Below the pieces are notes generated by a model. That model was not told the origin of the DNA. It saw only the letters and a program-made list of their open reading frames with translations, and did not search any database. A program made the position numbers and the translations under genes. From Podarcis melisellensis (Eukaryota), in assembly GCA_964234715.1 (NCBI GenBank), contig OZ174275.1: a stretch of DNA of 64,000 nucleotides; one strand, written 5' to 3'. Positions 6,898 to 55,334 of this stretch are shown piece after piece; position 1 is the stretch's first letter; the number at the start of each line of letters is the position of its first letter.

Positions 6898-15822
<8,925 letters not shown>

Positions 15823-16005
15823 TTGCTTCCTCCCTTCCCCCTTAAGGTGTGCACCCTGCAAGCATTTTCTCCAGAGGTCACCAAATCATTGGCCTCCAAC
15901 TTGCATCAAAAACCATGAAAACAATCTGGAACTTTCTGAGGACACTCTTATTGTAACCAACGCTTCCTTTTAAACATCTAGAATTATGGTGATGATTTTT
16001 TTTCT

Positions 16006-16011
16006 AATAAA
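16006..16011 (+). terminator. Probable PACSIN3 polyadenylation signal
   Basis: AATAAA about 185 nt after the stop codon. Confidence 0.6.
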
Positions 16012-16867
16012 GGTATATAAAATTTTCTGAATCCTGTGCGTTATAATGGAATAGAAGGTGGAAAATGCCCCGTGAAGCGCAAAGCACCCAAACTCCTTTC
16101 CTCTTCTGTGCAGTGATTCCAACAAGCCTATTGTCTGCCAGCTGAATAAGTAGCAGTTGCTCTAAAAATGAACATTAAAGGATAGTTAGAAGCCAACTGC
16201 GGAATGGCAACTCTCCGGCAGCTTATTCCTAGGCAAGGGTCAAACTAGCCATCTCAATTGCACCCCAACTACCTGTCTAGCAACTATATTACATAAGCTC
16301 CTATCCCAACTGCTGAATCTGTTGATAGTTTGCAGTACTGACTTCATATGGAAGCGAGGTATTGAAAACTATGCTGTTAAGAAGTGCAACTAGGATCTGA
16401 TATGACTGTTACAGGACAAACCATAGTATCCTTCAGTATAGTCACACTGATTAGATGGAAAGCACTCAAACAGGCATTATGTTTGTGGTAACAGATGTAC
16501 ATCAACTATACATGTGGGGCTCCTGTGCTACATCAGGATAGTTGTGAGAGGAGGTGCTAGTGGTGTTTGCACAGAATGAATGGCACAGCATTTCGGCCTA
16601 TAATTGTTTGCTAAGAACTGCCTTCGCTTCACTTCTTCACATGCCCCATGGAGCTATTTTTACAGAGCACCACTGTTAGGCAGTGGACCACTTTGGGTCG
16701 GGTCCTCAGCAATCTTGCAAGAAGTTGCAAAGATCACTTGCTGTAGTTGGTGTCTTTTATGTAGCAAACGTGCTTTGCCTCGGGGTTGAAGTTTTGCAAC
16801 AGGTGCAAGTCTGTTGAAATATGGAGTGCAGCTGTTGCAACAAGTAATCGCTCTCATTCCTGTGCTG

Positions 16868-16873
16868 TTTATT
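16868..16873 (-). terminator. Candidate polyadenylation signal of the THAP9-like gene
   Basis: tttatt on + (AATAAA on -) about 630 nt past the stop codon. Confidence 0.4.
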
Positions 16874-17191
16874 GACCTGGCCCAAGGCTTCAGCCACTTG
16901 GTGCTGGACTTTGCTTCTTGATAGCCAAAGGTCAAGAGTTATGTTCTAATCTGGGCTGCTGCCTCAGCTTTGCTTCTACAGACCAGAGTGGGGTTGGTAG
17001 CAAAAGTGCTGGGGAAGGGGGAAGTCCCAATTTGGGGGACTAGTTGGATAAAAGGCATATGGTTCTTAAAACTCCAGAGCTGGGACTGCACAACAAAGGA
17101 AGCCATGATAAGTCCATAAGCAAAATTCCAATATCCACTCAGGAAACAACTTTATAAAGACCAGCTTTGCCAATGTAAATAGGATACCAAT

Positions 17192-17260
17192 ATTCCTGCA
17201 TTGCAGGGGGCCTGGACTAGATGATCCTTGGGGTCTCTTCCAATTCTACAATTTTGTGAT
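17192..17260 (+). mobile_element. CR1 3' tail fragment
   Basis: attcctgcattgcagggggcctggactagatgatccttggggtctcttccaattctac, a typical CR1 3' end. Confidence 0.6.
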
Positions 17261-17501
17261 CCCCATGCTGTAAGCCCTGCAAAAATGCTTCTCAAAGGCA
17301 CACACATGTCACTTTCATGTGAAAAGTTAGAATGACCTTCCTGCATGTCAGTTCCGCGTGGCCCTCCCTGCCTGTGTCCGCTCCAATAAGAAAGCCAAGT
17401 GCAAAGCTGCCTCGTAGTTTTCTACCAGCTTGCAGCATATCATAAGCTACCGCTTCTCTTACAAGGCCACGTAAACATAAGCATTCAGCTTCCCACCACC
17501 A

Positions 17502-19446
17502 TCAAATAGGCATGTACCATTCCATGAGTCCACGCGTTTGCTGAGGCCAGTCCCTGCTGGGGCCATCTGCATTCCCTGTCTGCTGCTTACCATTAGCCAC
17601 TTTCAAAGAGCTGCTACATTCATGAGTCGGTGGCGTGGACAACTGCCCTTGCCCTGCCTCAAGCCACAGTTCCAAGAAGGTTCGCACAAGCTCCTGCAGC
17701 AGAGTGACGTAATGGTTGGAAACCACAGCGTTGCTCTCAAAGAGGTGGTTGCCCAGGGATGAGAAAAGACTGGGCTCCTCACTCACATCTGCCAAGATGG
17801 CCAGCTGCCGCGCCAAGAACCCGCGGTGGCTGGAGTCTCCAAGGAACAAGGAAGGCAGGCCAACAACCTGCTTTGCTCTGCGGATCACCTTCCGTACGGA
17901 CTCTGCCGGGAGGTACTTTCTTCCCTTGCTCTCCACGCACAGCAGGGCACTGCCCGTGGGCACACCCTTACAAGGGCACAAGAGGGCAGCGCGGCATTCG
18001 GCGCAGGAGAGGAGGGGCATCAGCTTCCCCAAAACAACGCAGGAAATGCAGGCGATGGCGTCTTCCTCCAACTCGGCCAGAAAGGCTGGGGCTATGCCCT
18101 GTGTCTCTCGTGGAGGCCCAGTGCCCCGAGGCAAGCGCCAGATCTGCCCGCGAGCCAGAGGCCAGGAAGCCTGCAACTGGAGGTTAGTTCTTCTGCGTAA
18201 GGATATGTCAAGCAGGTTTGGTGGATCGAGGCCCAGACCAGAAAGAGCTCTGTTCAAGACAAGCCTGTACGCCCGCTGGAAGGTCCATGCGGGGCCAACA
18301 CCTTTGTGCCCACGGGCTTGCTGTATGGCTCCCCTGCACCACTCCAGAGGGTCCAGGCTCCACCAACAGGACAGCAAAGAAGCGGTGGGCTCGTCTTCTG
18401 CCTGTAGGTGGGTCTGCGCCAGCCACTGAAAGCTGCGCAGGTTCACCAGGAAGCCAATGAAGCCCCATCGATGCCTGCTCAGCCCTACCAGCTCCCCGGT
18501 GGCAGTGCGGAGTTTGCGAAGCAGGTTCTCGTACTCGTTGCAGAGGTTGTTGAGGGCGCTGGCACTAGCGCGGGAGAGGGGTGCCTTGAAACCTTTCCCA
18601 TAGATGTTGCAGCTGCTGCACGTGTCAAAAATGGCACTCAGCAGCCCGATAAAGTGGGCAGTGGCTTCATGACCCTGAAATTGAGGCAGGCCGAGCCTCG
18701 CTGCAAAATGCAAAGCCTGAACCGTGCCCTCGCTGAACAACTGCGTGGCCCCATTTCCCCACACCTGCTGTTCCTGCGGGCTGATCGCTCCGGCCTGGCA
18801 TGCCGCCTGGAGCACCACTTCTTCCTGCAGAGCCCCGAGATGCAGGAGGTAATCCCAGCAGACCGCCTTGCCGCTCACCTGGAGGCTGCCGGCGGCTTGC
18901 AGCAAGCGGTGGATCAGCGTCAACAAATGGCTGGGATCGAAGTAGTATGCTATTTCCAGCGTAGGAGTAGCTGGATGGAAAAACGTGGACTTGACAAAGA
19001 GGCCGTCCACCGCCACTCCCAGCCGCCTGGCTGTCTCGATATTGGGAGCTGTGGCATCAGACGTCACAGAGACCACCTGCACGCCAATGTCGTACAGTTT
19101 GAGGATACAGTGGCATAGGAGCTGGGCTTGTATGTCACCTCTAAGGGTGGCAAGGAGGAAGTAGCCAACAGGCACTATCCACTGGCCTTGGAATCCAACA
19201 GCCACAAGCAGGAGGGCTTCTCCGGCTGCCGAAACCTCATCCGCATCATATTTACCAGCACCAAAGTCCATCAAACCATGCAAACGCCCGGTGGAAGGGT
19301 CATAGTGGCTTCTTCTTTCCAAAGGGATTGAGCCCATAAGGAGAGAGCACAACTTGAAGGTTTTCTCCCCTGCTTGAGATCTCTCTGCCAGAGCATCGAA
19401 GGCTTGTTGGCTGAATCCCGGCTCGTAATCCAGGTTTGAGAGCCAC
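17502..19446 (-). CDS. THAP9: THAP9-like terminal exon (RNase H catalytic core, GTP-binding insertion, C-terminal Cys/His domain)
   Basis: ctcatag|[16 protein letters not shown]... continues into the 616-aa ORF at 17502..19352. Confidence 0.93.
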
Positions 19447-22400
19447 CTATGAGGGAAGAAGCATGGGAAAGAAAGCTAATCAGCTCCATGTTTGGTTCAA
19501 ACAAAAATCTTTCTTCTACTGCCAAACCCCAGAGCCTGAGGATAGTATGTTTCTTTGCCCTCGTGCTTATGAAAAATCAAAGCATGATGTTACTTTCATA
19601 AACTATTTTAGGCCATGCTTGTGCTAGAGGGCCTGAGAATAGTTCCACGTGGGATGGCAGAGCCTGCATCAGTTCTGCTTTCATACTCTGGTTCTCTTTG
19701 CAGTACAGTGGTACCTCGGGTTACATATGCTTCAGGTTACATACGCTTCAGGTTACACACTCCGCTAACCCTGAAATAGTGCTTCAGGTTAAGAACTTTG
19801 CTTCAGGATAAGAACAGAAGTCAGGCTCCAGCAGCGCAGCAGCAGGAGGCCCCATTAGCTAAAGTGGTGCTTCAGGTTAAGAACAGTTTCAGGTAAAGAA
19901 CGGACCTCCGGAACGAATTAAGTACTTAACATGAGGTACCACTGTATTTGAAATCAAGAAGAAGAAGAAATCTCCCATAAACCATCAGGTGAGCTCAAAA
20001 GCCTGTTTTCTTCCCAACACACCAAATCATCCATGTGGTTTCTTTTAGGCTAACAGTGCATTTGGCACAGTTTGTGTAGGTCACTATTAGGTTGCTTCCC
20101 AATGGGCTCCTAGTGCTGTCTAATTGTTGCCTTTCTGTAAACTACAAGAAGAATCGCAATTGACTTTCTATAGTACTGTGCTTTTCCCACGTGTACATCC
20201 CCACCACATTGTGTCCAACGCTCTCTACCCCACTATTTTATGAGTTCATTTTTTAACACCTATATTTTAATTATCACTGAAAGATGTTTCTGGCTCTTGA
20301 AATTAAAGAGGCACATCATTATAGCACGGTACTTTGATTTTGCCAAGTGCCGGTTGTGTGGTTCTGTGATACACGCGCCATTGCTATGTCTGCTTTTCTT
20401 GATGTTTCCATAGTCCAAAGTTGTTTCCCCCATATCTGGGCTCTCACATAGCAGAGTAGGTTTTCTAGTGTTTTAACCAATTTTTACCATTTTACATTAT
20501 ATCTCTTGTACAGTGGTACCTCGGGTTACAGACGCTTCAGGTTACAGACCCCGCTAACCCAGAAATAGTACCTCGGGTTAAGAACTTTGCTTCAGGATGA
20601 GAACAGAAATCGTGTGGCGGCAGCGGGAGGCCCCATTAGCTAAAGTGGTACCTCAGGTTAAGAACAGTTTCAGGTTAAGGACGGACCTCCAGAATGAATT
20701 AAGTTCTTAACCCGAGGTACCACTGTAAACCACATAGAGACTACAGTGGTGCCCCGCAAGACGAATGCCTCGCAAGACGAAAAACCCGCAAGACGAAAGG
20801 GTTTTTCGGTTTTTGCGACGCTTCGCTAGACGATTTTCCCTATGGGCTTGCATCACAAGACGAAAGCCCATAGGGAAATCTCGGGGACCTTTTTTTAAAT
20901 GCTGGCGGTGGGGAGCAAAGCCTTTTCCCTGCCTCCGGACTTCAGAAGAGGTCCAGGAAGGCCGGCGGGGGCGAAAGGCTTTGCTCCCCACCGCCAGCAT
21001 TTTAAAAGCGGTCCGGGATAGCAGGGAATCGCTTCCCGCTATCCCGGACGGCTTTTGAAGGCAGGCGGGGGGAGCAAAGACTCTTGCCCCCCGCCCGCCT
21101 TGGGAAGAGGTCCTGGACAGCAGCGCTGCCTTTTCCGCTCTCCCGGAAGGGCAGGCAGGGGGGAGCAAAGACTTTTGCCCCCCGCCCACCTTGGGAAGAG
21201 GTCCAGGACCTCTTCCCAAGGCGGGCGGGGGGCAAAAGTCTTTGTCCCCCTGCCTGCCTTCCCGGGGGCTTTTAAATCGCCCCGGGACAGCTGAGAATTC
21301 CTCCGCTGTTCCGGGGCGATTTTAAAATGCTGGCGGGCAGCAGCGAAGGCTTCGCTGCCGCCCGCCAGCATTTTAAAAGCCCCCGGGACTGTCCCGGGAA
21401 GGCAGGCGGGGGGGAAGCAAAGACTTTCGCCCCCGCCAGCCTTCAGAAGAGGTCGGGGGACAGACTGTCCCCAGACCTGGTCTGAAGGTGGTTCGGTTTC
21501 CATAGGAACGCATTAATTGATTTTTAATGCATTCCTATGGGAAACCGTGCTTCGCAAGACGAAAAACTCGCAAGACGAAAAGACTTGCGGAACGAATTAA
21601 TTTCGTCTTGCGAGGCACCACTGTATTGTAGTTAAGTGGCATGTGCGTCTTATGATATTTTTTAGCTTATTTCTTTGGTGCCACTGAGTGTTTGGATGGA
21701 TGGGAGAAGACCAACCAATTCAGACTATCTTTCTTAGGTTGCAATCCTAAATGTACGTACGTGGGAGGGAGAGAGAGAGAGATCATACTTTTTTTGAGAG
21801 AGCAAGACATATTTCTGAGAAAACCTTTAGAGGCTTGCAGTGATGCTTATACCTCCAAAGTCTAGTTTTATCAACTAGCACAGCTGTTTCCTTTTCCTTG
21901 TGAATTGTCCATTCCTCTGCTTCCTCTTGCTAATAAATCTGATCTTACTTTAACCTCCAATGGATGAAAAGCTTAACTTTTCTCTCTCTCACACACACCA
22001 CACACACACGGGGCACACTACATTCAAGTCTTTTTGTTCACCTTGGCTTTCCCCTGATCAGAGTTTTGGACATCATTTGCCTCTCTCAAATTGCTTCCAT
22101 ACAACAATGTGATGCCAAGCCAGTGCAGAGGTTGTACTGTCATGCTGTACTAAACAAGGGACAGCCCAGGTTTAAATTCTGACTCACTCCTGAAGCTCCC
22201 TGGATGACCTTGGGTCAGTTACCATCTCTTAGCTTAACTTGCTTCACAGGGTTGTTGTGAGGATAAAATGGGGGTTGGACATAGAACCAAGTATGCTACC
22301 TCAGGTTCCTTGGAGGAATTTGGGATATGAACATAGGGCCCAATTCAACTAACCAGTCTCACTTGTGGAAGCCTGTGCAAGGACTTCTGCTAGTGCAATG

Positions 22401-25400
22401 AAGGTTTCTCCCTATCCTCCCACTGCATGCCCCCTGCACCTCTGATATCAGCTCTGAGGTGGTCAGGAGAACCCCTAGAAGAGCAAGCCTGAGTTGACAG
22501 TGTGATCTGTTTAGGGCTACACTGAATTCCTCCCATAATAACCCATGTAAAGTGATCAATCAGTTGGCTAGTACATTACTCAAATCTTTCAAGTTTCAAT
22601 TCCAGTAACCATGAAAGATTAACCATTTCCCCCCAGCATGCCTTCAAGGCCAGAGGTTTCTTGACCAATTGCATTTGGTGAAGTAGCAGTGCAATCCTAG
22701 CCATGTCTACAGAAGTCAGTCCTATTGAATTCCATGGGGCTTACTCAGAATAAATGGTGTTGGGCAGCAGCCTAAACTATTGTTTACAAAAGTCCATGCA
22801 TCAATAGTCTTCATGGTGCCACAGGCATCCGTCTGTCCCTTGCAGGATGTCAAACTCATTTTTATCTCAGTCATCCAGCCCTAAATCCTGGGTTACCAAC
22901 AGTCATATCCTCATGGTTTGACAATTTCCTCCATTTGCCCAATATTGCATTTTTAATGAAAGCTTTTCCAGGGGATCTGCAAATGTCTCCTCTGAGGAAC
23001 CGGATTTTCAGATTTGGCCTCTTCTTTTTGGAACAAAGGAATTTGCCCTACTTTCCTTGAGGGATTGTTACATTTCCCTGGAATTTGGTTTCCGGCAACC
23101 TGAGTGAAGGCATCCTTGATACAGGGCCTCTGAGGGTGGAATTCCCTTCCCCTCCAGATAACATCTACGGCAGCTCTTAGGAGTTTTTGCAGCTTGTGAA
23201 AAACCTTTTTTTCATCTGGACCTTTGGCTGAATTTCTCTCTCTCCTCTGCACCTCAAACTTCATATTTGCCCTTGTGGATTGTTTGATGTGGAATTTCCT
23301 TGTGTAGCATGAGAACAGAGGAAGCTGCTTTATACCAAGTCAGACCACTGCTTCATCTAGTTCCACAATGTCTGCTCTGGCTGGCAGAAACCCTTCAGGA
23401 TTTGGGGCAGGAGCCTTTTCCCAGCTCTCGGACTGAACCAGGGACCTTCTGCTTGCAAGTCAGATCCTCTGCCATTGTGGTCCTTCAGAAGATGGCCCAA
23501 GCAAGGTCATCCATGTCTGAGCAGTCAGTGGCAAATCTTACACAGAAAGCTTGCAGACTACGTTCAGGAGCTCCTCTAGGTCTGTACGTGAGGTGTCCCG
23601 ACATAACGAAGTAATGTGTTTTCAGGCATTCTCCACCCCTCTTTCTTTTCTCCCATCTTAAAAGTGTCACACTGGAAAAAGTAGTTTCTTCAGCAAGCTA
23701 GAATGCATATATAGTGCCTATGTCTGTGCACTCTTGCTTTGCAACGTTTGCCCCTAGTTAACACAAATAAGATACAAATAAGAAAGACATACGTGCGAAG
23801 GGTGGTGGCCTCTGGGAGCTGGAATGTCTTCTTCACAAATTCATAGGCCTTGGCTGAGAACAAATGCAGCGAGACGGCAAAATTGCGGGTGGCAGCTGGG
23901 TAGTTCTCGCACAGGGCTCCCTCACACTGCAAAGTGAGCTGCAGGTCTGCTGAAGTAAAGAGGGTTCCTCAAGCAAGGGATGGACAGTGAGGTGAAGCTA
24001 ATTTGGGGTGATGCTGCAGAGGAAGAGTCTTTAACATTGGCCTCAGCAGTGACTCTGCTGCGTTCAGACTGGGGGCTAGAAGAAGATTCAACATCCTCTA
24101 TTTTCATGGGGAGGGAAACTGAGTCCAAAACCCAGGAGGATTGGGTGACCAAGAAAGCAGAGAAGGGTGTACTTAAAGTTATTAAGGGTTTGGGGAAGTG
24201 GGGGAGATTTGTAGCAATTGCATACCGAGCACAACTGGCCAGTCGGAAATGCTGAGGAGGTAATCAAGTGGGGTAAAGGTAAAGGTACCCCTGCCCGTAC
24301 GGGCCAGTCTTGACAGACTCTGGGGTTGTGCGCCCATCTCACTTAAGAGGCCAGGGGCCAGCGCTGTCCGGAGACACTTCCAGGTCACGTGGCCAGCGTG
24401 ACATCGCTGCTCTGGCGAGCCAGAGCCGCACACGGAAACGCCGTTTACCTTCCCGCTGGTAAGCGGTCCCTATTTATCTACTTGCACCCAGAAGTGCTTT
24501 CGAACTGCTAGGTTGGCAGGCGCTGGGACCGAGCAGCGGGAGCGCACCCCGCCGCAGGGATTCGAACCGCCGACCTTTCGATCGGCAAGTCCTAGGCGCT
24601 GAGGCTTTAACCCACAGCGCCACCTGCATCCCTACAATCAAGTGGGGTAGGGGGGCTGAAACAATGCCAATATATTCCACATCTGGCAACCAATGCACTC
24701 CTTTGGTTTCAGATAGTACATGGGTAGATGAGTCTAAAAAGCCCAGGACACAATTTTGTCATGGCCTTCTAGCAGCTACAGTGGTACATTTACCAGAAGC
24801 AATGTATTTAGTGTTAACTCTGGAAAGGTATACTTGATACTGACCAAACTAAGCCTCCTAAAGCAAAATATACATCCGGAGGCATAGTTTTGTCTTCCAG
24901 AGTTAACACTAAATACATTACTTCTGGTACGTGAGCCACTAAAGGGCTGTGAAAATTACCCCACTCATCTTAACCAAGCCTTGAAGCTGGTTTGTATCAT
25001 GGCTCCCTCCTTGGAACCTTGAATGATTCTGAAACTGCACTGGTCTTATTGTAAAGGTCCTCTGGCATGAAGAAGAGCCCCTTTGGCAAGGCTTACAGTG
25101 CTTACCGCTGAACTGGGAGCGCAGCATGTGTTCCATGTCCTTCTGGAGGAGATGCTGCTCCCGCAGGCTCTCCAGCACACTCCACAGCTCCTGCTGATAA
25201 TAGGAGAGGCGGCGCTGGGCTGCGTCCTGCTCCCGTTCAGTCCCCTGCACTGGGCCGGTGGGGATCAGAGACTTGGTTCTGCTGCCCATAGCTTCACTCA
25301 GGCTATACTGATGCTCCGCTTGGATGAGTTCCACCTACAGGAAGACAAAGAAGACCCGTTGCTTCATCTTTTTAATTCTCTCACCATAACTTCCATGTCC

Positions 25401-28400
25401 TCCTGGCACCCGATGTTTGTCCATGTGGATTTTCCACAAAGGGCTGGATTTGCTTATTCCTGAAAACTAAACTGACTTCACCTTTCTCCTTTGCCTTGAT
25501 TTTCCTTTTAGCCTCTCACCACAGCCAGAGTAAACCCTTCCCAGACTCCCTTCTCCCATCAGAATCACAATAGTTAGTGGATGTGGCCACTCTCCCTCTT
25601 TAAAGCTAACTTAGGATACCGTGATGGAAGTCAGGTTCTGCAGTTTGCTCCAGGAGCAAAGAATGTAAAGTTCTACCTTTGTACAGTAGGCTGGTTTCTA
25701 CTCACACTTACACACCTCTGTCCTCCATCCAGGCCCACAAGAAGCATTATTTGAGGTCAAGGATACATTCCAGCCAGGCACAAACACGCAAGGAGGATGC
25801 AATCTAAGAACAATTAGGGATGTGGCCTTGGAAGAGTGGGTGTGGCCTGGGGAGTGTCCTGAGGACCAGAGAGGGACCTGGAGGGCCACATTTCACCCAT
25901 GGGCCTGAGGTTCCCCATCTCTGCTATAGGCTTTGTCCAAGTCCCAATGGTAATATAAGCTACATGCTACAGCATTTAGTGACACGCAGTTTTGTAATTT
26001 TAGATTCTGGACTGAACAGTCTCCTGGTGGGGAGGAGGGGCTCTTCATATGGTAATTTGGAGCCAGCTCTGCTGTGTTTAGTGTTCTCCTGCTCTTTCTT
26101 CTGTGTGGGGCCCTTGACCTCTGCCCCAAAGTCCTTCCCAACAGCTGCATTGCTGGCATTGGAGAAGGCACCAGCTACCCTCGCTGGTATACCTACTGCT
26201 TTGGCTTGTGCAGGAGATGAGTCAGCTGCTGGAGTAGCTTCGCTGATACTAGCCACTGGCCAACTGATGCCCATGGTTTTGACAGACTTTGATGGATGTT
26301 TCCCTTTTGTTGGTTCCTGTATTGAGAAAGAGTTCAAATGAATTAGACATAGCAATTTGACCAAAAAAAGAAAAAGGCCTGGTTGAAACAGACTGGATAA
26401 GCTAATGCTGTAGTAGAAGGCAAAAGTGAACAAAAAATAATCCCCAACAACATTGCCATGGCATTACTGGAACTAATTAAGCATACTTCAAACATTAGAG
26501 GCTGGATCCAGGTTATGCCTTAGTCCCACACAACTTACTCATGACTATCTTAAGTTTCATCAATTTAACTGGGTGAAAAGTTAACCACTGGGTTGCAATC
26601 CTAGATACACTTATCACAAAGTCCCACTGAAGTCAGTGGGATTTACTTATGTGTAGACATGTGTAGATTGTGGCATTATGTTTGATCCAACCTACTCTCT
26701 ATGTTATTTACTCATTGTCAGGCAAACCCAGATTTATTTCAAATGAAGAAAAAAAGGCATTTCTGAGACCAGAATACAGATGAGGGCTTACGTATTAGAA
26801 TAGCCATCCACTGCAAACCTAATTCACTGCACAATAAAGGTAACATTGTCAGAGACAGTTGTTCTCTTAGCCTCCTCTGTGGTGTGCTGGTTTTCCAGTG
26901 AAGTGTCTGACTTCAAACACAGAATTCCTCACCTGTGCTCTGAAATAGTATAGTCTGAAGGTTAAGACACATCCCTTTTCCTCAACACCAGCTGTCAGGC
27001 ATGGGAAGGGAATGAATTCTGGACTCTCGGAACAGAGACACGCAATTCAGTGCTGCCTACACTGATTTGACAACAACTCTCCATGGTTCCAAGCAGGAGT
27101 CTTTAGCCAGCATAGAATCATAGAGTTGGAAGAGACCACAAGGGCCATCGAGTCCAACCCCCTGCCAAGCAGGAAACACCATCAGAGCACTCCTGACATA
27201 TGGTTGTCAAGCCTCTGCTTAAAGACCTCCAAAGAAGGAGACCACACTCCTTGGCAGCAAATTCCACTGTCAAACAGCTCTTACTGTCAGGAAGTTCTTC
27301 CTAATGTTTAGGTGGAATCTTCTTTCTTGTAGTTTGGATCCATTGCTCCGTGTCCGCTTCTCTGGAGCAGCAGAAAACAACCTTTCTCCCTCCTCTATGT
27401 GACATCCTTTTATATATTTGAACATGGCTATCATATCACCCCTTAACCTCCTCTTCTCCAGGCTAAACATGCCCAGCTCCCTTAGCCGTTCCTCATAAGG
27501 CATCGTTTCCAGGCCTTTGACCATTTTGGTCGCCCTCCTCTGGACACGTTCCAGTTTGTCAGTGTCCTTCTTGAACTGTGGTGCCCAGAACTGGACACAG
27601 TACTCCAGGTGAGGTCTGACCAGAGCAGAATACAGTGGCACTATTACTTCCCTTGATCTAGATGCTATACTCCTATTGATGCAGCCCAGAATTGCATTGG
27701 CTTTTTTAGCTGCCGCGTCACTCTGTTGGCTCATGTCAAGTTTGTGGTCAACCAAGACTCCTAGATCCTTTTCACATGTACTGCTCTCAAGCACTACCTT
27801 GAGATGCCAGACATTGCACCGGGGACCTTCTACATGCAATGCAAATATTCTGCCCCTGCATCACCTTGCTTCCCCATTATTATCAGTGGGATATGGAAGG
27901 AAAACTGGTTTTGGAAGTAAAGCTTTGCAGTCTTTTCAGACAGAGGCCTAATCTCAAGCATGCCAGTTCTTCAGGTGCAGATTATTGTGAACTGTTAGTC
28001 GTATATATCAAACTTCCTAAAACATTTCCGATGCTGTTGGGCTAAAGGGTACACTAGAAAGGACTATAAAAATCTATGCACAATGACAGCTACAGAAAAT
28101 ACACTAAAGACAAAAGAAAAAGAAGAAAATTGCACAGATGAATATGATTCTTAATAAAATGCTTCTTAATCAAAAACTGCTTGGAACATTCCCCCACCCC
28201 ACTGCAGCACACCTAAGCATATTCCCCCCGCCCCCACTTTGACGTAGCAGGAACCATATCCATCTCTGCAGCTGTCCCTTTTTTTGTTTTAGGACTATGG
28301 AAATCCTCTGCTAAGCCCACAAGCCGGTGGCAGAACAGGAAAAGTGCTGGGAGACCTTGACCTTGATCAAAAGCTGCAATGCTAAATGCACTTACACAAA

Positions 28401-28576
28401 GAGGGGCACAACCAATAGGATACAATGACACTTAACCTCTGACTAAATATGGATAGGACTGTTGGAAATGTGTGATAACAAAGTGTATAAGAAAGAAGGG
28501 AAACTCTGCAATGTGTCTTCCTCTGGGAGAGTTATCAGCTGAAGTGTGGGATACAATTTTTCAAAATAAGATAAAT

Positions 28577-28614
<38 letters not shown>

Positions 28615-31600
28615 ATTAAAAAATAAATAACTCAAAAACTACTGCTACTTAAAGTGTCCCTGAATTTGGTGCATTTGCCTGACCACCTTTTTCCTGCTAT
28701 TCCCTGACTCTTCTGTGTCTTGTCCCTCTGTTGAAGTGTGGGCTAATTTTGGCAGGGTGCCAATATATTGACCAATATATTGTACAACACTTAACATACA
28801 TTTAAGCACTTTAATAAATAGATTTCCCCACTGAATATTGCTCCCAGTACAGCAATCACTTCCTTGTTCCTGTCTTCCATTTCTACATACTATATTTCAT
28901 GTCAGGCTATCATCTGGACACCCCTTCTATTGCCAACAAATGGTCTGTCCTAGCAGGTATCTGGATAAAGAAGTTCTTTTGTGGCTCCTTTTTCACTATA
29001 TGACCCTTTGTCCGAGCAGCTGAATCAGAGACTCATAAAATGTGTTGGCACTTCTTCAGCTTTCCAGTTCCTGCTATTACTGAGCAAAAAGCTGATGAAC
29101 CACAGTTCTTCTCTTCCATTCCCTTTATACATACACCCCCAAGGCCCACTACCAATTCCCAAACTCACGTCCTCCCTTACTGCATTATCCTTCCTTCAAC
29201 CCAAGTTTGCAAGTTTAAGTAAATCCTCTCCCTATTCTGAATCCTGCTGTTTTTGGCAATGTGCCTTTTTCATTCCCATATTCCCACTTTCAATTCACGC
29301 TCTTGCACCTATGTTCAGTGGATTACATACTAGGAAATGCGTCTATCTACTCAACTGTCTTCAAAAATAAACACAGTCACCTACAGCTTATTTTTCTTCA
29401 TTTCACGGATGTTCTTAGAAGCCATTGTTTCCTGAGCAGCAGGGGTGGGCGCAAGAGCTGCACTGCCCCATGGAGAACCTTACAAGGGCCATATGCAAGC
29501 CATGGAGGAGGCCAGGGCAAAATTGGGTGGGGCACCGGATGGGACTCTGATCTTAGTACCATAGGCTACACCCTAGTCATGCAAAAGTCATAACAATCTG
29601 TACTCCCTGACACCCACATACACACTTCTTTCCATTCACACAAGCAAAAGGTATCATCACAGACATCTTCCAGCCAGGCAACAGTTCTCAAGGAGGGCAC
29701 AGAACAGTGACAATGAAGGGTGTGGCCTAGTGAGAGCCATGAGGGCCTGAAAGAAAAGCCTAGAGAGCCACATTCACCCTCAAACCTGAGGTTTCCTAAC
29801 ACTGCTGAATGAGAAGGGGAAAGTACCATGGAAAAGTGAGGCTGTATCAAATCTTATTCCTATGCAGAGGAGACCCACTGAAACTAACAGACATGACTAA
29901 CTTGGGTTCATTAATTTTAATGGGCCTACACCAAGCAGAATTTAGTTGGAGTCAACCCTTAGAGGTTGCAGGTTTTAGACTGGACCAGAACTTGAGGTAG
30001 CACATATTTTAGGGACAAAGGAGATCTGGTAGGAGAGCCCTTGAGGTTAGTAAATGAGAACCAAGCTGCAGCTCAGAAATCCCTCAGTATGGCCCAAATT
30101 GCTGAGCAAGGCAGACAATTAAAAAGTCCAGCTAAGCTGCCAAGGTGAGCTGCACTACAGCTTTCCTGACCAGGGAAGAGTCACTAGCAGGAAGCCTTTC
30201 CTGTCCTGTACAAGGAAGACAAACATCCCTAACGCCAGCAATTCTTACATTTCTGCTGCCTTCACAGAAAACCAGGGGATGGGATCGGAAGCATCCACCT
30301 CTGCAGCTCTGTATTGTCAGAGACTAGGAATGCTGACAGAAATTATGAGGGATTTGAGGGACCTGGGTAAGATTTAGGGACGAGAACCAGCCTTCTTGTT
30401 TCTGTACCACAACTCTTTCCCCTCTAGAACAGCATGACTCACACCAAGGAGGACAAGAGTTAAACCTCTGGGAAGTTAGTTTGCTTCTGTGAGTTGTGCA
30501 ATGTCATTTCCCCACCCCTTTGGCTATAAAAAATTCAAATGACTTTCCATTCAAATGAATTTATTTCAACTTTTGGAAAGAGGCAAGGAGGGTGCACTCT
30601 CCCCAGGCGCTCACTTTTTGGACTGAGGTAGCAAATCCAGTTATTACACCAGGGCCTTCTCACAGGATGTTGTGGTTACCTCACTAATCCAAACCAGATG
30701 TTGAGGATCCCAGAGACCATTGCTTTCTTCATGCAGTAACCCAGGCCTCTCCCAGATGTGAGCAAGATATCAAGGCTGAGAGAAACCCGTCAGAAAGTCC
30801 TAACAGTACCAAATAAGACGACTCCATTTAGAAAGCATTTTGCATCTGCCTAGTTCTTTAAGAGGCTTGTGATTGTTCTACAAAGGCATCAAACTAAACT
30901 CAGTTCTCCTTCTGTGAGAAGGATTACAAAACAGGCCACTTTGAAGCTTGAAGCCATGTACAGCCAGGTAGGCTGCATCTGGATAAAATCACTTCTTTTG
31001 GGATGCTTCCCACCTCTGCCCCTGGCCATCTTCTGTGTTTGTCATTTCCTTCTACCTTCTATGACCCAAGATGAAAGCTTTCAATTGCCATAGGTAGCGC
31101 AAGATCTTCTGCCTCAATCCACAAAGGAGATCTACCTAGCCCAGCATCTTGCTTCAAAGAGTAACAAGCCACATGCTGCTAGGGACTTGCTTCAAATCTT
31201 AATGTAACCCAGGATACCCTGCCCTCTTGGACATTTTGTTCCTGCTGTAGCATGACATTTAACAACAGCTGTACATACTGAAACTTTTCGTGGACAGTGC
31301 TTGTATTATTCAGGGACTGAAGACAAGGAGGCAGGGCACTCTCCTGAAACAAACACTTGGCAGTTAAGAGCAGTGTGCCTATGTTGCAGCTTCAGAGGCA
31401 CACAGATACCCATTCTGAAAGAAAACAACAGGAAACACAGGACAGAGAGCCTCAGGGAGCTACGTTTTGGGCAGCCTATGCACTGATGAATACAAGCAGC
31501 AATAAAGGGGGGGGGAAGGCCCCACATTGCAGCCAAATCTGATGTTCCCTCTTGTGGCAAAACCAAAACGTTAATCTGTGCAGAGATTCTTTTAGATTGG

Positions 31601-31837
31601 ATCAGCAATACTTCCAGAAAAACACCTCCCTACACCATGGAAGCATGGAAAAAAGATTAGATATAAAGAGTGAAGGACACACAGTCTTCCCCCCCCCCTT
31701 TTAAACGTCTTAGCAAGGACAGAAAACATGATGTTCTGATGTTGTACAGTACTAAGAAACTCTGCCAAAGCCCACCAATCAGGGACTCTAGGTGATGGTG
31801 CCCACAAATGGAGGGAACCAGCGAACTCTTAATGACT

Positions 31838-31871
<34 letters not shown>

Positions 31872-33228
31872 GAGCAGATGCCCCTTCATCACAACATGAG
31901 AAACCAGCAGTAACTCTGCTGCTGGAAGCCCCAAAACATCCCAATAAGCAGGGGTTCAAGACTCCTTTTGCTGCTCTCAAACACAATTTTGTAGCCAAAA
32001 CATGCAAAGGAAAGGAAGAAGATCCCACCCAACACAGCACTCATGTTGTTCCCATAGCACATAAAGAGCCGATCCCAAGTGGTGCCGGAAAGAGGCAAGT
32101 TGAGGGGCAGTTCAAGGTCCAGGCAAGAAGTGTTCCAGCCTGGTGCTGAGGTCTTTGAGCTGGAGCTACCGGAACCACACCCAGGGGTCCCGCTGAGTTT
32201 CATGAGCTGTTGTCAAAGAAAGACTCCCAAGTCTAGTACTTCCCTTTATGGACAGGTTTCCATTTGCTGTTTAAAACATTGTTGCTCCTACAAGCTCAGG
32301 GTGCACCCAGCCTTAGCTTCTGAGGCCAAACTCTCCCACTGTGCCAACTGCCCCACAGCAGCCTTGTCCAAGAGTCCCAACTTACTCATCTCCCCAGATC
32401 TAGTCAGGTCTGGGGCTTTGCTAAGTACTGGGGGCTCCAGGTCATCCTCAGATGAGGAATTCTCCAGCTAATACATAGCACAGGGGTAGGCAAACTAAGG
32501 CCCGGGGGACGGATGCAGCCCAATCGCCTTCTCAATCCGGCCCACGGACGGTCCGGGAATCAGCGTGTTTTTACATGAGTAGAATGTGTCCTTTTATTTA
32601 AAATGCATCTCTGGGTTATTTGTGGGGCATAGGAATTCGTTCATTCCCCCCCCCCCAAAAAAAATATAGTCCGGCCCCCCACATGGTCTGAGGGACAGTG
32701 GACCGGCCCACGGCTGAAAAAGGTTGCTGACCCCTGACATAGCAGCAGTAGTGGGGGCTCTAAAGCCTGCAAGATTATTTAGGCCCACCAGGCTGCCCCA
32801 TTTGGCCTGTGAAGGCATTTTGGTCAATCCAAGCCCATCTGTCCTACACCAGATGTCATATCAGGACGTCATCAGGTGTCAGGCAAACAAAGACAAAGCT
32901 GGGCCAAAAACGGTCTTGCTTGCAAAGCAGCTGATTGCAGGCACCTACAAAGTACTGTGCCCTTGGTTTGATTTCAAGCTGTGCAGGTCAAAGGAAGATG
33001 GGTCACCTGACATTACGGTGATGTTGGCTGACTGACAGGTGGGCAACCCCATCCACCCATTAAAGTTGGCCCCTGGGTGGTGGGGAACATAAGGACCCTC
33101 AAATCTTCTGACCAGCCAATTCCCCACTCCAGAATAGGGCATGGAGCTGAGAAGCAACCCATGCCCACTCAGCTAGTGTAACTGTAGTATTAAATTACAA
33201 TGAAATTCTCTCCCACTGAATAATATTA

Positions 33229-33278
<50 letters not shown>

Positions 33279-36200
33279 TTAAACCACAGACATCCAACTG
33301 GCTTGCCCCAGACACTCTGGGCATCTTTCAACATAATATAAAAACACAGTGAGACATCAAACATTAAAAACTTCCCGATACAGGGCTGTATTTGGAAAGT
33401 TGTGTAATTGTTCATTCTTTGACATCTGATGTGGGGGCATTCAACAGGGCGAGTGCCACTACTGAGAAGGCTCTCTGCCTGGTTCCGTGTAACTTCACTT
33501 CTCACAATGAGGGAACCACCAGAAGGCCCTCAGAACTGGACCTCAGAGCTGAATGATGGGGGCGAAGCTGCTCTTTTAGGTATACAGAGCCGAGGCCATG
33601 AAATCAGTGAGACCTGAAATTTCTTAAACTTGAATAGATTCTGCCTGAACTTGCAAGCAGAAATGGAAACACTGCAACCAGGGTGTGGCGCAAACTCAGT
33701 GAAACGTTACACAAAGTGGCCATTGTCTGCCGAGCAATCATGTGTGGGTTTGCATATTGCAGGGTTCCCCACAAAGCACTCCAGTGTTAAAAAAACAAAA
33801 CCCCAACCCTCTAGATGTCCGTCCCCCCGTTATGTGAACCTAATAAGCAACCTGGAGGAAACTAAAATCTGGATCAAGTAGAGGAACTCTAAAAAAGAAA
33901 TAGAAACATAGAGATACCCTGAAATACACATAAATTGGTCAGTCAACATGTTTTGAATTAATGCTCAAGGTGGTATAGAAAAGTTGAATACAATGGAAAT
34001 AATAGCTAAATATAACCTCCATTCTTCCTGTGTGCCAATATAATGTTACTGTTAAAACCTTCCTACCCTACAGCAATGAAATATGGAGTGACACTGTGAC
34101 ATAAAGAGGAAATGGGTGGGGGGAGATGACATTTTATTACAGTGGTACCTTGGGTTACATACGCTTCAGGTTACATACACTTCAGGTTACACACTCCGCT
34201 AACCCAGAAATAGTGCTTCAGGTTAAGAACTTTGCTTCAGGGTAAGAACAGAAATCGGGCTCTGGCGGCGCAGCGGCGGCAGGAGGCCCCATTAGCTAAA
34301 GTGGTGTTTCAAGTTAAGAACAGTTCCAGGTTAAGAACGGACTTCCAGAACGAATTAAGTACTTAAACTGAGGTACCACTGTACAAGCAAATCTTCCAGA
34401 AGCATAGAAATGAACAGCGCAATTAGATAATGTGCAGGGGTGGGGGAAGTGTATTTACAGAACAATCCTATTCTCGTGCTATGACAAAGAGGCAGTAGAT
34501 AAGTCACCACTTTGTTGGCTGAATAGCTGCCACACCCAATGCAAGCTCAACCTGAAACAGTGTGGTGTGGAACACACAGCACAGAAACGCCAAAAGCAGT
34601 ATAAACACAACAGACACAAACTCACTGCCCCTAGAAACATCCAAAAGCCCACCAGTTAAGGACTATGCCTGGAATGAGAGCCAGTGTGGCGTAGTAGGGA
34701 GAGTATTGGACTAGGACCTGGAAGAACGGAGTTCAAATCCCCACTCGGATATGAACTGCACTGGGTGACTTTGCGCTAGTCACAATCTCTCAGCCTCACC
34801 TACTGTACAGGTGTGTTGCAACAGTGAAATGGAGATGGGGACAACCATGTATACTACCTTGAACTCCTGGAGGAAAGGCAGGATATAAATGTAATAGTGA
34901 AGGATGCCCACCAATGGGGCATTTGCCTCCCACTCACCCCTCCAAGCCCCAACATCCAATTATAGGTGCTAGGAGCACAAGGGTTGCAGGAGAAGCCCTG
35001 GTTTGTTAGAAAAGTGCAGCAGGGCTTCTCCTAAACCCTGCAGCCCCTCAACCAGCAGAGAGCAGGCCTTTTCTGTAGTAGTTCCTCATCTGTGGAATGC
35101 TCTCCCCAGAAAGGCTCACCTGCCACCATCATTACATGTCTTTAGGCGCCAAGGAAAAACATTCCTCTTTACCCAGGCCTTCAGCCATTAAATAATCTAC
35201 GACTTGTTAAATGTGTTTTTTGGCAGGGACTGTTATTGTGAATATTTTATTAGCATGCATCTATAATTATGCTCTGCATTATGCTTTTTATTATTATGCT
35301 CCGTGAAATATGTTCTTGATGTTGTACACCACCCTGGGATCTTCTGATAAAGGGTGGTATATAAACTGAATAAATAATAATAACAATAATAATCTTCACT
35401 GTAGGATTGTGCCCTTAAGTTTCTGGTATCTTCTTACTCCAAGCACCTGACATGTCCTCCACCACACAGCATATATTGTATAATAATATTACGGCTCCCT
35501 CCAGTGGATCATGCTGTTGATGCACTGGGAGAGGGAATCAAACACTTCTCCAAACTTTGAGGCTACTTGTTGCTGGGAACAGAGCAAGGGCAACAACATG
35601 AATTGGTGTGAGATAATCTTCAAGTGTACCAACATAGTGTCAGCAGCACTTTTTTTTATTATGACTGCTTGCAGTCTTGTCTGCCTTGGTAAAAGGAACA
35701 GTTTTTACCCCGTGAAATAAGGCAGCATGGCTTGGATCATGAGCAAGAACATCAACACACACGAGAAGAAGAGTAGCAATTGCTGACAAAAACACATGAC
35801 CAGCATGTCAAAGTTTAGAGCCCTGCTGGATCATATCAAAGGGCTGTTTAGACCAGTAGTGGCACACCTTTTTTCAGACCAGGCTACCTATTTCCTTTTG
35901 AGCACCACATGTCAGTGGTGGGTGAGGCAGCAGCAAAAGAAGGCAGAGTAATGAATGCAAATTTAACCTTTCTATACACACACATACTCATACACCTCTC
36001 TTTATCTTCTATCCAGACAAGCCAGTGGCGTAGCGTGGGGGGTGCAGGGGGGGGCCGGCCGCACCGGGTGCAACATCTGGGGGTTAGGGTTAGGGGGCGC
36101 AAATCCACGGGTTAGGGGGCGCAAATCCACGGGTTAGGGGGTGCAAATTACTTGCCTTGCCCCGGGTGCTGACAACCCACGCTACGCCACTGAGACAAGC

Positions 36201-37565
36201 AAGCCACATCATTAGAATTCCAACTAGGCAACAATATTTAGGGTGTGAAGGGTATCACCTGGGAAGAGTTCCAAGTGCCAGAGAGAGAGGTTTGGAGAAC
36301 TGTGTTTGGTCACCAGGCCTGAGGTTCTCCATCCCTGACTGAGACCAACATCTTGTTTCCCAGTTACCAACCAGATGCCTCTGGGCAACCCCCCCCCCCC
36401 AGTAAATGGCAATTCAGAGACAGTTGGAGCTGGCCTATGACCATCATGATTAGTTACAACTGATACTTTTAAAAGCAAAGTGGGAAATAAGATTATCTAA
36501 ATCCTCATGTTTAAACTCGACTGTTAGCTGACTGTGCCTCTTCAGACTGTGGGTGGGTGATCAAATGTAGAAATGCTTTCTGATATTTTAGGTATACACT
36601 TGTCTGTGCAGAAAAATTATCAGTGGGAGGGAATGTGGACATTCATCCCAGTCTTTAAGAATTTGGTGGAGCACATGGTTTCTATACAACTGGGCATCAT
36701 AGGAGCCAACTCCTAGGGGCTGTGGGGGCTTTGGCCCCCACAATAAAATATTTAACCACAATGTTGATGGGCATTTCTATTCAAATGGTGTGTGTGCACT
36801 GTGTCATGTGATTGATTATGCAGGGCGGGGTTTACCTGGGCCCCCACAATATTTTATTTAAATTGGCACCCCTGCTGGGCATTCAAAAGCATCACGGCCT
36901 CTGACAGCAGTGCAGACCCATGAATCCTCTTTTATAGGCACCTAAGCTGGTGGCCACCACTGGGGGAGCAATCACAGATGGAGGCTAATATTCTGCCTTA
37001 AACCATGGTAGAGCATTGGTTACTTGGTGGCCCTGCCTGGCAGCACTCTCCTCCGTTCTCTGGTGCTAGGATACCTTGAAGGAGAACACGGAGGGGATCA
37101 CGCCCGCCTTCAGCCTTTTCTGTCCTCCATACACCTCGAAGTCATCCTGGAAGAAATGATCTGAGCAGATGCAGGCGCCTGAGCCTGGGATCCACAGCTT
37201 CCTGGAGCCTGGCTCAATGCGATTCACAGCCAGCATCCACTTCTTCCTCAGTTCATGGGCTTTGGGGAAGCTGGAGGAAGAAGAGATGGGAAACTATAAA
37301 TCCCACTGACTTTCCCCACATGGGCTGATGGTGAAGGTGACGACACCGACTGACACAAAGCCCCGCCCACAACCCCACACCTGGCCCCGCCCCTTGTTAA
37401 CCAAAGCCCCGCCCCCTCCGCTAATAGGCTTAGAACCAGCCACGCTCTCCATGAGGAGGCCCCATTACGGTATTCAGATGCAGACCTGTGGAAGGAGAGG
37501 CCCTTGGCCCGGTTCTCCCGCGTGTCCCGGTTGGGACAGTTAACGGCCGAGCAGGCTTTAGGCAT
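17502..37565 (-). CDS. THAP9: THAP9-like domesticated P-element transposase gene (THAP zinc finger + P-type RNase H fold), about 907 aa
   Basis: Minus-strand exons 37486-37565, 37075-37270, 26197-26316 (donor uncertain), 25106-25334, 23793-23946, 17502-19446 total 2724 nt, all GT-AG and in phase, with no stops. THAP C2CH domain [10 protein letters not shown]...SFHSFP...W...CSDHF...VIPSVF. P-transposase motifs [67 protein letters not shown]. The symbol marks family membership; orthology is not shown. Confidence 0.9.
19706..19944. mobile_element. TcMar MITE family A
   Basis: Same TIRs, TA TSD. Confidence 0.85.
20511..20725. mobile_element. TcMar MITE family A
   Basis: Same TIRs, TA TSD. Confidence 0.85.
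20744..21623. mobile_element. TcMar MITE family B (880 bp) with a GC-rich internal repeat array
   Basis: TIR CAGTGGTGCC(C/T)CGCAAGACGAA, TA TSD, subterminal GCAAGACGAA repeats. Confidence 0.85.
23793..23946 (-). CDS. THAP9: THAP9-like exon 5 (HTH region of P transposase)
   Basis: cagcag|[10 protein letters not shown]...[10 protein letters not shown]|gtatgt. Confidence 0.87.
24276..24635 (-). mobile_element. Sauria SINE, full length
   Basis: Minus strand starts GGGATGCAGGTGGCGCTGTGGGTTAAA, has B-box GGTTCGAATCC and an (ACCTTT)n tail. 14-bp TSD AATCAAGTGGGGTA at 24262-24275 and 24636-24649. Confidence 0.88.
25106..25334 (-). CDS. THAP9: THAP9-like exon 4 (HCF-binding motif, coiled coil)
   Basis: cctgtag|[12 protein letters not shown]...LRSQFS G|gtaagc. 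Confidence 0.85.
26197..26316 (-). CDS. THAP9: THAP9-like exon 3 (low-complexity linker; 3' boundary uncertain)
   Basis: Acceptor caatacag|GAA CCA in phase 0. Best phase-0 donor is GCA|gtaggt; the frame stays open to a stop at 25960. Confidence 0.55.
27111..27792 (-). mobile_element. CR1 LINE, 5'-truncated (end of ORF2 + 3' UTR)
   Basis: EKDLGVLVD...[19 protein letters not shown]...RRLRGDMI; (ATTCTATG) tail. Confidence 0.92.
28579..28611. repeat. (TG)n microsatellite
   Basis: Read directly from the sequence. Confidence 0.9.
31841..31869. repeat. (AC)n microsatellite
   Basis: Read directly from the sequence. Confidence 0.9.
32481..32736. mobile_element. hAT (Charlie-like) MITE
   Basis: TIRs CAGGGGTAGGCAAACT / CAGGGGTCAGCAACCT; perfect 8-bp TSD ACATAGCA. 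Confidence 0.88.
33225..33610 (-). mobile_element. L2-type LINE 3' fragment with (TAA)n tail
   Basis: Reverse copy of the same 3' end as at 11755; (TTA)n at about 33229-33277. Confidence 0.6.
34140..34381. mobile_element. TcMar MITE family A
   Basis: Same TIRs with slight decay, TA TSD. Confidence 0.85.
34675..34897 (+). mobile_element. tRNA-derived CORE-type SINE
   Basis: A/B-box-like head (ggagttcaaatcccc), CORE-like ctgggtgactttg...tctctcagcctc. Relatives at about 22117-22332 and 49746-49955. Confidence 0.65.
35045..35392 (+). mobile_element. L2 LINE 3' fragment
   Basis: Peptide RE(Q)[14 protein letters not shown]...KTFLFTQAF typical of the L2 ORF2 end; AAT tail. Confidence 0.65.
36023..36192. 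mobile_element. hAT-type MITE carrying TTAGGG-containing repeats
   Basis: Perfect TIR CAGTGGCGTAGCGTGGG; perfect 8-bp TSD AGACAAGC. Confidence 0.88.
36698..36874. mobile_element. Short non-autonomous DNA transposon with an 8-bp TSD
   Basis: Imperfect TIRs CATAGGAGCCAA / CAGGGGTGCCAA; perfect TSD CTGGGCAT. Confidence 0.75.
37075..37270 (-). CDS. THAP9: THAP9-like exon 2 (THAP C-half)
   Basis: cctccag|[65 protein letters not shown]|gtatcc (not in the ORF track). Confidence 0.9.
37486..37565 (-). CDS. THAP9: THAP9-like exon 1 (THAP N-half)
   Basis: ATG at 37565; [28 protein letters not shown]|gtctgc. Confidence 0.88.
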
Positions 37566-37767
37566 CGTCTCCGACTCCGCGGCGAAAAGCCCCAATCCCG
37601 GCTCCCGCCAAGCGCGGTTACTTTGCCTCGAGCGTCATGGCGGCAACGTCCGCGGCGCACTCTGAACTGACCCCGGAGGCGACCCGTCGGAGGGAAACGC
37701 CCCGCGCGCGGATTGGTCCCCGCGGCGACCTGTTGCCGGCCGCGGTGGGTGCTGGGAAAAAGAAAAC

Positions 37768-52262
<14,495 letters not shown>

Positions 52263-54183: not shown

Positions 54184-54189
54184 AATAAA
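54184..54189 (+). terminator. Probable ARFGAP2 polyadenylation signal
   Basis: AATAAA followed by a GT-rich downstream element (gtgtgtgttcc). Confidence 0.6.
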
Positions 54190-55334
54190 ATCAAATACGT
54201 GTGTGTTCCATTTCTGTGACTTCCTTTTTTTAATTCAGATGTAGCTGATGGACCCCAGGGACACTGAGGCAAGCAGAGCTACTCCCTTTTCTTGCCATGG
54301 GCTAGGAAGGGAAGTTAGCAGACTTCAGGTGAGGTGTAAAGAGGACACAGTCTGGGTGTGAAAGCAGCCTTAAAGGATTACCAATTTGTGTTGATTTTTT
54401 CTTTATGAAAAATGAGCTGATTTGAAACACCGTCTGATTAATACACTTTTTTAAAAAAAACTTTGTACCTTCCCTAGGAAGACACTTACCAATGATTCAG
54501 TGGAGTTTTGAGCGGTATTGTCACCTTTCGCATTCCCTCAAGTTGTAATGAATCTCAGACACATTACTTGCCTTTTACAACATGCTTTATTTACTATATA
54601 TTATACTTTGTTTGCAGGAAAGTTTAAAGCTTTGCAATTTAATAAATAATGCCCTACTCCTTTCTCCTACGATAGAGCCCAGTAAGCATTTGAAAATGCT
54701 CATCGGCAATGGCCATCCCACAAAGTATGGAAGCTTAGCCCCAAATTTCAAATCTGGTGACTTAACTGGGGTCATGTCTTACTAACTTGTTTGAATTTTG
54801 AAGTGAAAGCTTGGAAGGTATTGGACTAGCTAACCGACTAGCAGATAGGGCATATACAGGAGGAGAAAGTAAAATAAATCTCGCGAGGACAAGAAGAGTG
54901 CTTTGAGTTACAGGCTTCATCTTGTATATTTCCTATCCTTGGATGAGGATGAAAATGTTTCACAGTGCATAGTTTTGGGATTAGAATTGATTCTTCAAAG
55001 GTAGCTACTACTTGCCCTAGTGCTAGAACGTTTCTACTAATTTGACTTGTTTGCCACCAGAGGGCAGTCGAACCCTGCAGCTGATGTCAGCTTTCATGGC
55101 CTAGCCATCCAATTTCTCTGCCAGTATGAGAAGAAAACAACAGTTTTTGTTAGAATGGGGTGTGCCTTGCTGAGAGGGAGCTCTGAGCTATAATACTGAT
55201 AAAGAGTAAAAAGGAGTAGGTCACACGTTGAGCTTGTGGAGGAAGGTACTTAAACAGCTATGTTTCATCAACGCCTACATGGCTTCAGTTACAAGGGCTG
55301 AAAATAAGCTTGTACTCCCATGCATATCTATCCA

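Follow-up and report, generated by a model that had tools for sequence, protein, structure and literature searches.

THAP9 is treated as the lone domesticated P-element transposase of vertebrates. In the human protein D304, D374 and E613 are required for excision (PMC8230255), and D230 of the fly P element superposes on human THAP9 K282 (PMC10824691). Within the same superfamily, the mobile P-like element Pdre2 of zebrafish (zfTHAP9) has terminal inverted repeats (TIRs) of 13 bp, 8-bp target duplications and many deleted copies (PMC10983969). Here we describe a THAP9-like gene in a 64,000-nucleotide stretch of the lizard Podarcis melisellensis (contig OZ174275.1, assembly GCA_964234715.1; the whole stretch is called the window below). 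The gene lies on the minus strand between ARFGAP2 and PACSIN3. It is, in our assessment, most probably a host gene present in a single copy that descends from a P-element transposase, and an ancient paralog of THAP9 that was duplicated before mammals and sauropsids separated. If so, vertebrates hold a second, sister gene that has been masked by a common name.

Using tblastn with full-length relatives and a splice-site search, we found six collinear blocks in the window that correspond to six coding exons, read from 37565 down to 17502, all with GT donors and AG acceptors. The spliced frame is 2,727 nt long and its 908 codons include no premature stop, in agreement with the original prediction, made from the sequence alone, of six in-phase GT-AG exons and an uninterrupted protein of about 907 aa. 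With the annotated ‘DNA transposase THAP9 isoform X1’ of Podarcis raffonei (P0001) the protein shares 887 of its 908 residues, and dS between the two genes is 0.035. Domain and fold searches were run exon by exon with this ortholog as the full-length proxy, while the exons were joined for frame, length and residue numbering.

The exons encode a THAP finger followed by the body of a P-type transposase, just as had been predicted, with Pfam matches to THAP, HTH, RNaseH_N, GBD and THAP9_C in this order. Exon 1 (37486 to 37565, 80 nt, ATG at 37565 to 37563, ending at a GT donor) is 100% identical to residues 1–26 of P0001 and holds the first half of the finger with C5 and C10. Exon 2 (37075 to 37270, 196 nt, as long as exon 2 of turtle THAP9) contributes the remainder of the THAP domain (Pfam E 1e-9) with P29, W38, C62, H65 and P86, so that the C2CH residues C5, C10, C62 and H65 and the accompanying P29, W38 and P86 are all present and the finger is intact. 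A linker region follows in exon 3 (26197 to 26316, 120 nt), and a predicted helical linker in exon 4 (25106 to 25334, 229 nt). Exon 5 (23793 to 23949, 157 nt) encodes the P-element transposase HTH (Tnp_P_element, PF12017, E 1.3e-14). Exon 6 (17502 to 19446, 1,945 nt including the stop codon at 17502 to 17504) encodes an RNase H-like core with its insertion (GBD) domain and the THAP9 C-terminal domain, matching TNP-like_RNaseH_N at E 2e-31, GBD at 5.5e-28 and THAP9_C at 3.4e-11. The largest uninterrupted piece, a minus-strand open reading frame of 616 codons at 17502 to 19352, carries these last three domains, and the HTH lies in another open reading frame, upstream. PF12017, PF21787, PF21788 and PF22824 thus occur in family order, all above their curated cut-offs. 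An AlphaFold model of the exon 6 product (mean pLDDT 79) has as its top match in the PDB the Drosophila P-element transposase in its strand-transfer complex, 6p5a (E 1.6e-15, TM 0.68, 416 columns, 21% identity).

The comparison with other reptiles supports a fixed host gene, as the original prediction had proposed. The order ARFGAP2, THAP9-like gene, PACSIN3 recurs in Podarcis raffonei, Alligator mississippiensis and Chelonia mydas, in each case with a divergent ARFGAP2 (540 aa) and a convergent FCH/SH3 PACSIN gene. Exon-wise dN/dS is 0.28 against Podarcis, 0.17 against alligator and 0.24 against Chelydra, and all frames are open, which bears out the purifying selection that had been suspected. 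Copy number was assessed indirectly: one syntenic locus was found in four species, and the depth over the exons in assembled contigs is that of a single transcript. Splicing is documented by contigs of four small runs from relatives (X1, X5, X12 and X14; three coded organisms, four studies; guessed to be RNA), in which exon 6 is followed by exon 5 and exon 4. These contigs, up to 4,599 nt long, omit 4,346 bp and the next intron precisely at the predicted GT-AG sites; the joint 19444 to 23791 is listed for X1, X5 and X12, and X14 has the junction of exons 5 and 4 only. RNA junctions were among the checks proposed at the outset, and for exons 6, 5 and 4 they fall where expected. Judged from sequence, the gene is an intact, apparently expressed and selection-maintained copy of a domesticated P-element transposase, apparently present once.

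Its relationship to THAP9 is the more consequential question. A profile search shows that database proteins named THAP9 fall into two groups that are about 35% identical to each other. Group A contains the window gene and its counterparts in squamates, alligator and the turtles Chelydra and Pelusios, which are 59–73% identical to the alligator protein; group B contains mammals, birds and other turtles and is about 35% identical to the same protein. In an exhaustive search no sequence fell between the members of group A, with identities of 60% or more, and the group B representatives (32–34%), and other P-like transposases scored lower still. In every case checked (lizard, alligator, green turtle) group A sits at ARFGAP2–PACSIN3. 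The group B gene of guinea fowl lies between a 1,277-aa WD40 gene (SEC31A-like) and an 804-aa TCR/CXC gene (LIN54-like), and that of a gecko has the same TCR/CXC gene downstream; we take this to be the SEC31A–LIN54 setting of human THAP9, as the original prediction had given it for the human gene. No neighbours are called within 10 kb of the turtle THAP9 locus.

Phylogenetic trees place the two groups as sisters. With 14 outgroups, support is 100/100 each for A, for B and for A plus B, and group A is sister to mammalian and sauropsid THAP9 together; the same topology is obtained with 34 outgroups and under LG+C20 PMSF. A tree with THAP9 had been suggested as a check, and in it the window gene belongs to a separate, fully supported clade outside all amniote THAP9. 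Cluster look-ups of the outgroups led mostly to short, anonymous contigs, along with one protein from a tick and one from a mayfly. An alternative is that the duplication was confined to the sauropsid stem, with group A diverging fast and its outside position being a long-branch artefact, so that the paralog would be younger and mammals would never have lost it. Group A is indeed known from sauropsids only, and its stem branch has roughly double the length of the group B stem. Yet an approximately unbiased (AU) test rejects a clade of A and sauropsid B under LG+G4 (delta lnL 38.4, p 8e-5) as well as under LG+C20 PMSF (delta lnL 19.0, p 0.0014), and the monophyly of group B is supported at 99–100. 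We consider this younger origin unlikely and, in view of the long stem, keep it as a minor rival.

Several points weigh against an ancient duplication of a complete domesticated transposase gene. The group A stem is long (0.8–1.0 substitutions per site) and long-branch attraction may contribute to its position, though the mixture model and the AU test agree. The tree holds no named amphibian, lungfish or fish sequence, so the duplication is not bracketed from below. That birds and mammals lack group A, and that lacertids, snakes, anoles and monitors lack group B, is concluded from annotated proteins and a word-limited search, not from searches of genomes. That the runs with spliced contigs represent RNA is a guess, and the organisms behind them are relatives, not the one of the window. 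Finally, TNP-like_RNaseH_C (PF21789) has no Pfam match in the window protein at E 0.01; the family is just ‘weak’ in the alligator and turtle orthologs, and the helix that bears the catalytic glutamate E629 is well aligned and modelled with high confidence.

The original prediction had left it undecided whether the gene is a paralog or a relocated ortholog of THAP9. That it could be the lizard's sole THAP9, shifted from SEC31A–LIN54 to ARFGAP2–PACSIN3, is suggested by the NCBI label THAP9 in squamates and crocodilians and by the lack of any listed lacertid group B protein. The paralog stands and the relocation falls, since several reptiles have both genes. Chelonia mydas carries an ‘uncharacterized LOC102930032’ (group A, on a 134-Mb contig) and a ‘THAP9’ (group B, on a 142-Mb contig), and cluster look-ups found both groups, on different contigs, in Chelydra serpentina, Lepidochelys, Eretmochelys and Crocodylus porosus. 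Moreover, the gecko THAP9 beside the LIN54-like gene is merely 34% identical to the window gene, and group A is not nested among sauropsid THAP9. A relocation is therefore very improbable. Among squamates, group B proteins are listed for one gecko and one cordylid only; among annotated proteins, lacertids, anoles, snakes and monitors are represented by group A alone. This fits a loss of the true THAP9 on the lineage to lacertids and toxicoferans, after which annotation pipelines would have given its name to group A. In birds and mammals group A was not found among annotated proteins in a word-limited search.

As to how the second gene arose, the introns are informative. With an exact spliced-match walker we found that each of the four introns in turtle THAP9 has a counterpart in group A at the same alignment column and of the same phase. 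Exon 1 is 80 nt long and exon 2 196 nt long in both; group A has one extra intron, of phase 0, following exon 3. The four shared positions indicate that one already intron-bearing gene was duplicated. A second, independent domestication of another P-like transposon that landed by ARFGAP2 could appeal to the identity of about 35% to THAP9, which is as low as between some transposon lineages, and to the abundance of P-like transposases in animals (2,576 matches). It is hard to reconcile with the common introns and equal exon lengths, with the monophyly of A plus B against 34 outgroups, and with outgroup transposases whose contigs are too short to hold introns (such as a 947-aa protein on a contig of 3,041 bp), and we regard it as highly unlikely. 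The ‘candidate second domesticated paralog’ of the original prediction is accordingly upheld as a paralog but not as a separate domestication event.

Under an ancient duplication, the history may have run as follows. A single P-like transposase gene would have been domesticated and would have gained introns, and a DNA-level duplication of this intron-bearing gene would have followed, ahead of the split between mammals and sauropsids. Of the two copies, one would have remained between SEC31A and LIN54 as the true THAP9 (group B), and the other would have come to lie head-to-head with ARFGAP2 and tail-to-tail with PACSIN3 as group A, persisting in squamates, turtles and crocodilians and being lost in mammals and birds. 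Transcription would start from a CpG-island promoter common with ARFGAP2, and splicing as predicted would yield a 908-aa protein in which an intact DNA-binding THAP finger of the C2CH kind is followed by an HTH, by an RNase H-like core that an insertion domain splits, and by a THAP9-type C-terminal domain.

An active or recently active P-type transposon copy, for which the complete open reading frame might speak, is scarcely credible for a 20-kb locus with five introns and no TIRs that is conserved from lizard to alligator and turtle, evolves at a dN/dS well below 1 and has lost the canonical first catalytic aspartate; nor is the P superfamily among the six DNA-transposon superfamilies named in a survey of the anole genome (PMC3014272). 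The absence of TIRs, noted already in the original prediction, follows from a search in which no inverted 11-mer linked the 3′ flank (15000 to 17520) with the 5′ flank (37540 to 38250), where 0.12 would be expected by chance.

The neighbouring genes are PACSIN3 and ARFGAP2, as proposed earlier from the sequence. Their identity was confirmed with less conserved exons, because those PACSIN and ArfGAP exons that are conserved most strongly do not discriminate between paralogs. PACSIN3 is encoded on the plus strand (6898 to 15822, ATG at 6898, stop codon at 15820 to 15822), downstream of the transposase-derived gene and in convergent orientation to it, the stop codons being 1,679 bp apart. Among its F-BAR exons, two of lower conservation reach 66.9 and 75.7 bits with PACSIN3, compared with no more than 53.9 and 61.2 bits with PACSIN1/2, and its linker exons contain no NPF motif. 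ARFGAP2, also on the plus strand (37768 to 52262), begins with exon 1 at 37768 to 37839, the ATG being at 37768, has its zinc-finger exon at 38242 to 38361, and its last exon ends in DRYGSY and a stop codon near 52262; a central non-catalytic exon is identical at 44 of 45 positions to residues 269–313 of ARFGAP2. The divergent start codons of ARFGAP2 and the THAP9-like gene are separated by 202 bp (37566 to 37767). This spacer falls within a CpG island (37300 to 38400; GC content 0.62, observed/expected CpG 0.79 compared with 0.26 for the window) and measures 202 bp in Podarcis raffonei, 164 bp in alligator and 183 bp in green turtle. It presumably acts as a bidirectional promoter common to both genes, in line with the earlier description of the 5′ flank as simply the ARFGAP2 promoter.

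The introns are laden with transposable elements, as had been noted. They contain high-copy repeats, with depth peaks at 19540–19939, 20340–20939, 21340–21739 and 24140–24739. In transcriptome-like runs of related lizards the same segments reach contig depths of tens of thousands, and many of the contigs connect them in a rearranged order; these high-copy repeats are probably transcribed. Within intron 5, positions 20707 to 21503 have long open reading frames on both strands with a recurring peptide and resemble an internally repetitive element. A minus-strand frame of 189 aa in intron 2 (27270 to 27839) has no Pfam match at E 0.01; we presume that it resembles the C-terminal part of a CR1/LINE reverse transcriptase. 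In the roughly 12 kb past the ARFGAP2 stop codon (52263 to 64000) no gene was identified here, and the plus strand has stop-free stretches of some length, such as one of 186 codons at 57879 to 58436. Rfam and tRNA scans of the window gave no matches.

What the protein does can be approached through its catalytic residues. We numbered them by the horse sequence in the alignment, which equals the published human THAP9 numbering; the human residue numbers come from papers and no human contig was compared. The equivalents of D304, D374 and E613 are kept in the window protein as D321 (codon 19268 to 19266), D391 (19058 to 19056) and E629 (18344 to 18342). At D304, Asp is found in group A except for Asn in Candoia and Phrynocephalus, in group B of both mammals and sauropsids, and in 27 of 30 outgroups. 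At D374, all 15 group A sequences, mammalian THAP9 and 29 of 30 outgroups have Asp, and sauropsid THAP9 has Ala (gecko, turtles, crocodile), Gly (birds) or a deletion (cordylid). E613 is Glu in group A except for Gln in crocodilians, in mammalian THAP9, in sauropsid THAP9 except for Gln in pigeon, and in 28 of 30 outgroups. The remaining column, K282 of human THAP9 and D230 of the fly, holds Gly in all 15 group A sequences (G299 in the window protein, codon 19334 to 19332), Lys in mammals, Gln in birds, Asp or Glu in turtles, Asp in crocodile and cordylid, Gly in gecko, and Asp in 28 of 30 outgroups. The fly triad D230/D303/E531 is thus incomplete: D391 and E629 correspond to D303 and E531, and D230 is replaced by Gly.

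By these residues, group A is roughly as intact as human THAP9 and is not a canonical DDE enzyme. Overall it is also no more eroded than THAP9: of 66 columns conserved in B and the outgroups A retains 54, and of 59 conserved in A and the outgroups B retains 48. With Gly in place of the canonical first catalytic Asp, transposition chemistry is doubtful, and any cleavage by the group A protein would be non-canonical, as reported for human THAP9 with its Lys at this position. The changes within group A are lineage-specific, the equivalent of E613 having become Gln in crocodilians (P0016, P0084) and that of D304 Asn in the boa Candoia and the agamid Phrynocephalus (P0005, P0012), which hints that catalysis is not what selection maintains. 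DNA binding by the THAP finger appears to be the best-supported activity, and the protein may act mainly through sequence-specific DNA binding and assembly on DNA.

D374 is lost in all sampled sauropsid true THAP9 proteins (P0089, P0252, P0021, P0081, P0253, P0083, P0286, P0090, P0316, P0319, P0259, P0257 and P0307) and kept in mammals. The published analysis describes D374 as conserved only in mammals, with ‘class-specific substitutions’ at this site (PMC10824691). Two paralogs that lost different catalytic residues, group A with Gly at the first Asp and sauropsid THAP9 with Ala or Gly at D374, amount to a natural experiment. A bolder and rather doubtful proposal is that group A, a pre-amniote sister of THAP9, could be the sole surviving P-derived gene of lacertids, snakes, anoles and monitors after the loss of THAP9 and, since it keeps the D374 equivalent, also the reptile copy that still cuts DNA. 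Function would then have been divided between two domesticated transposases or passed from one to the other.

Although databases annotate the second gene, it is apparently undescribed: searches of the literature for THAP9 together with ARFGAP2, PACSIN3 or ‘paralog’ found, within what was searchable, no description of a paralog. Its labels vary, one and the same gene being an ‘uncharacterized protein LOC102930032’ in green turtle (P0068/P0064) and a ‘DNA transposase THAP9’ in alligator (P0016) and Podarcis (P0001), so that across reptiles the name THAP9 spans two different genes. In PMC10824691, the sequences of 6 lizards, 4 alligators and 7 turtles were put together as orthologs of THAP9. Two 2026 preprints on THAP9 do not mention paralogs, duplication or synteny, and one of them reports, without explanation, that reptile sequences form five clusters, with leopard gecko, Lilford's wall lizard and saltwater crocodile among their members. 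As both genes have been pooled as orthologs, the ‘class-specific’ residue patterns of reptiles are probably in part a mixture of two genes. The retention of group A dates back at least to the split between squamates and the turtle–archosaur lineage.

Set beside the known systems, the lizard gene shares superfamily and protein architecture with zebrafish Pdre2 and differs from this mobile element by being syntenic across reptiles, with no TIRs and apparently none of its target duplications or deleted copies. Compared with the Drosophila P-element transposase (6p5a, 6pe2), the predicted fold of the exon 6 product superposes, and two residues of the DDE triad, the second Asp and the Glu, are matched in the alignment, whereas the lizard gene is apparently single-copy, has introns at THAP9 positions, carries no TIRs and has Gly in place of D230. 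The closest likeness is to human and other vertebrate THAP9 (PMC8230255, PMC10824691): the order of THAP domain, linker, HTH, RNase H-like core with insertion domain and THAP9 C-terminal domain is the same, the length is similar (908 aa compared with about 900), four introns have equal phases, the canonical first catalytic Asp is replaced in both, and equivalents of D304, D374, D414, D519 and E613 are present. In contrast to THAP9, the lizard gene is just 32–35% identical in sequence, lies at the PACSIN3–ARFGAP2 locus, has one additional intron, and differs in having Gly instead of Lys at K282 and, in squamates, K786 where THAP9 has E776; it belongs to a separate clade that, among annotated proteins, is confined to non-avian reptiles and coexists with THAP9 in turtles and a crocodile.

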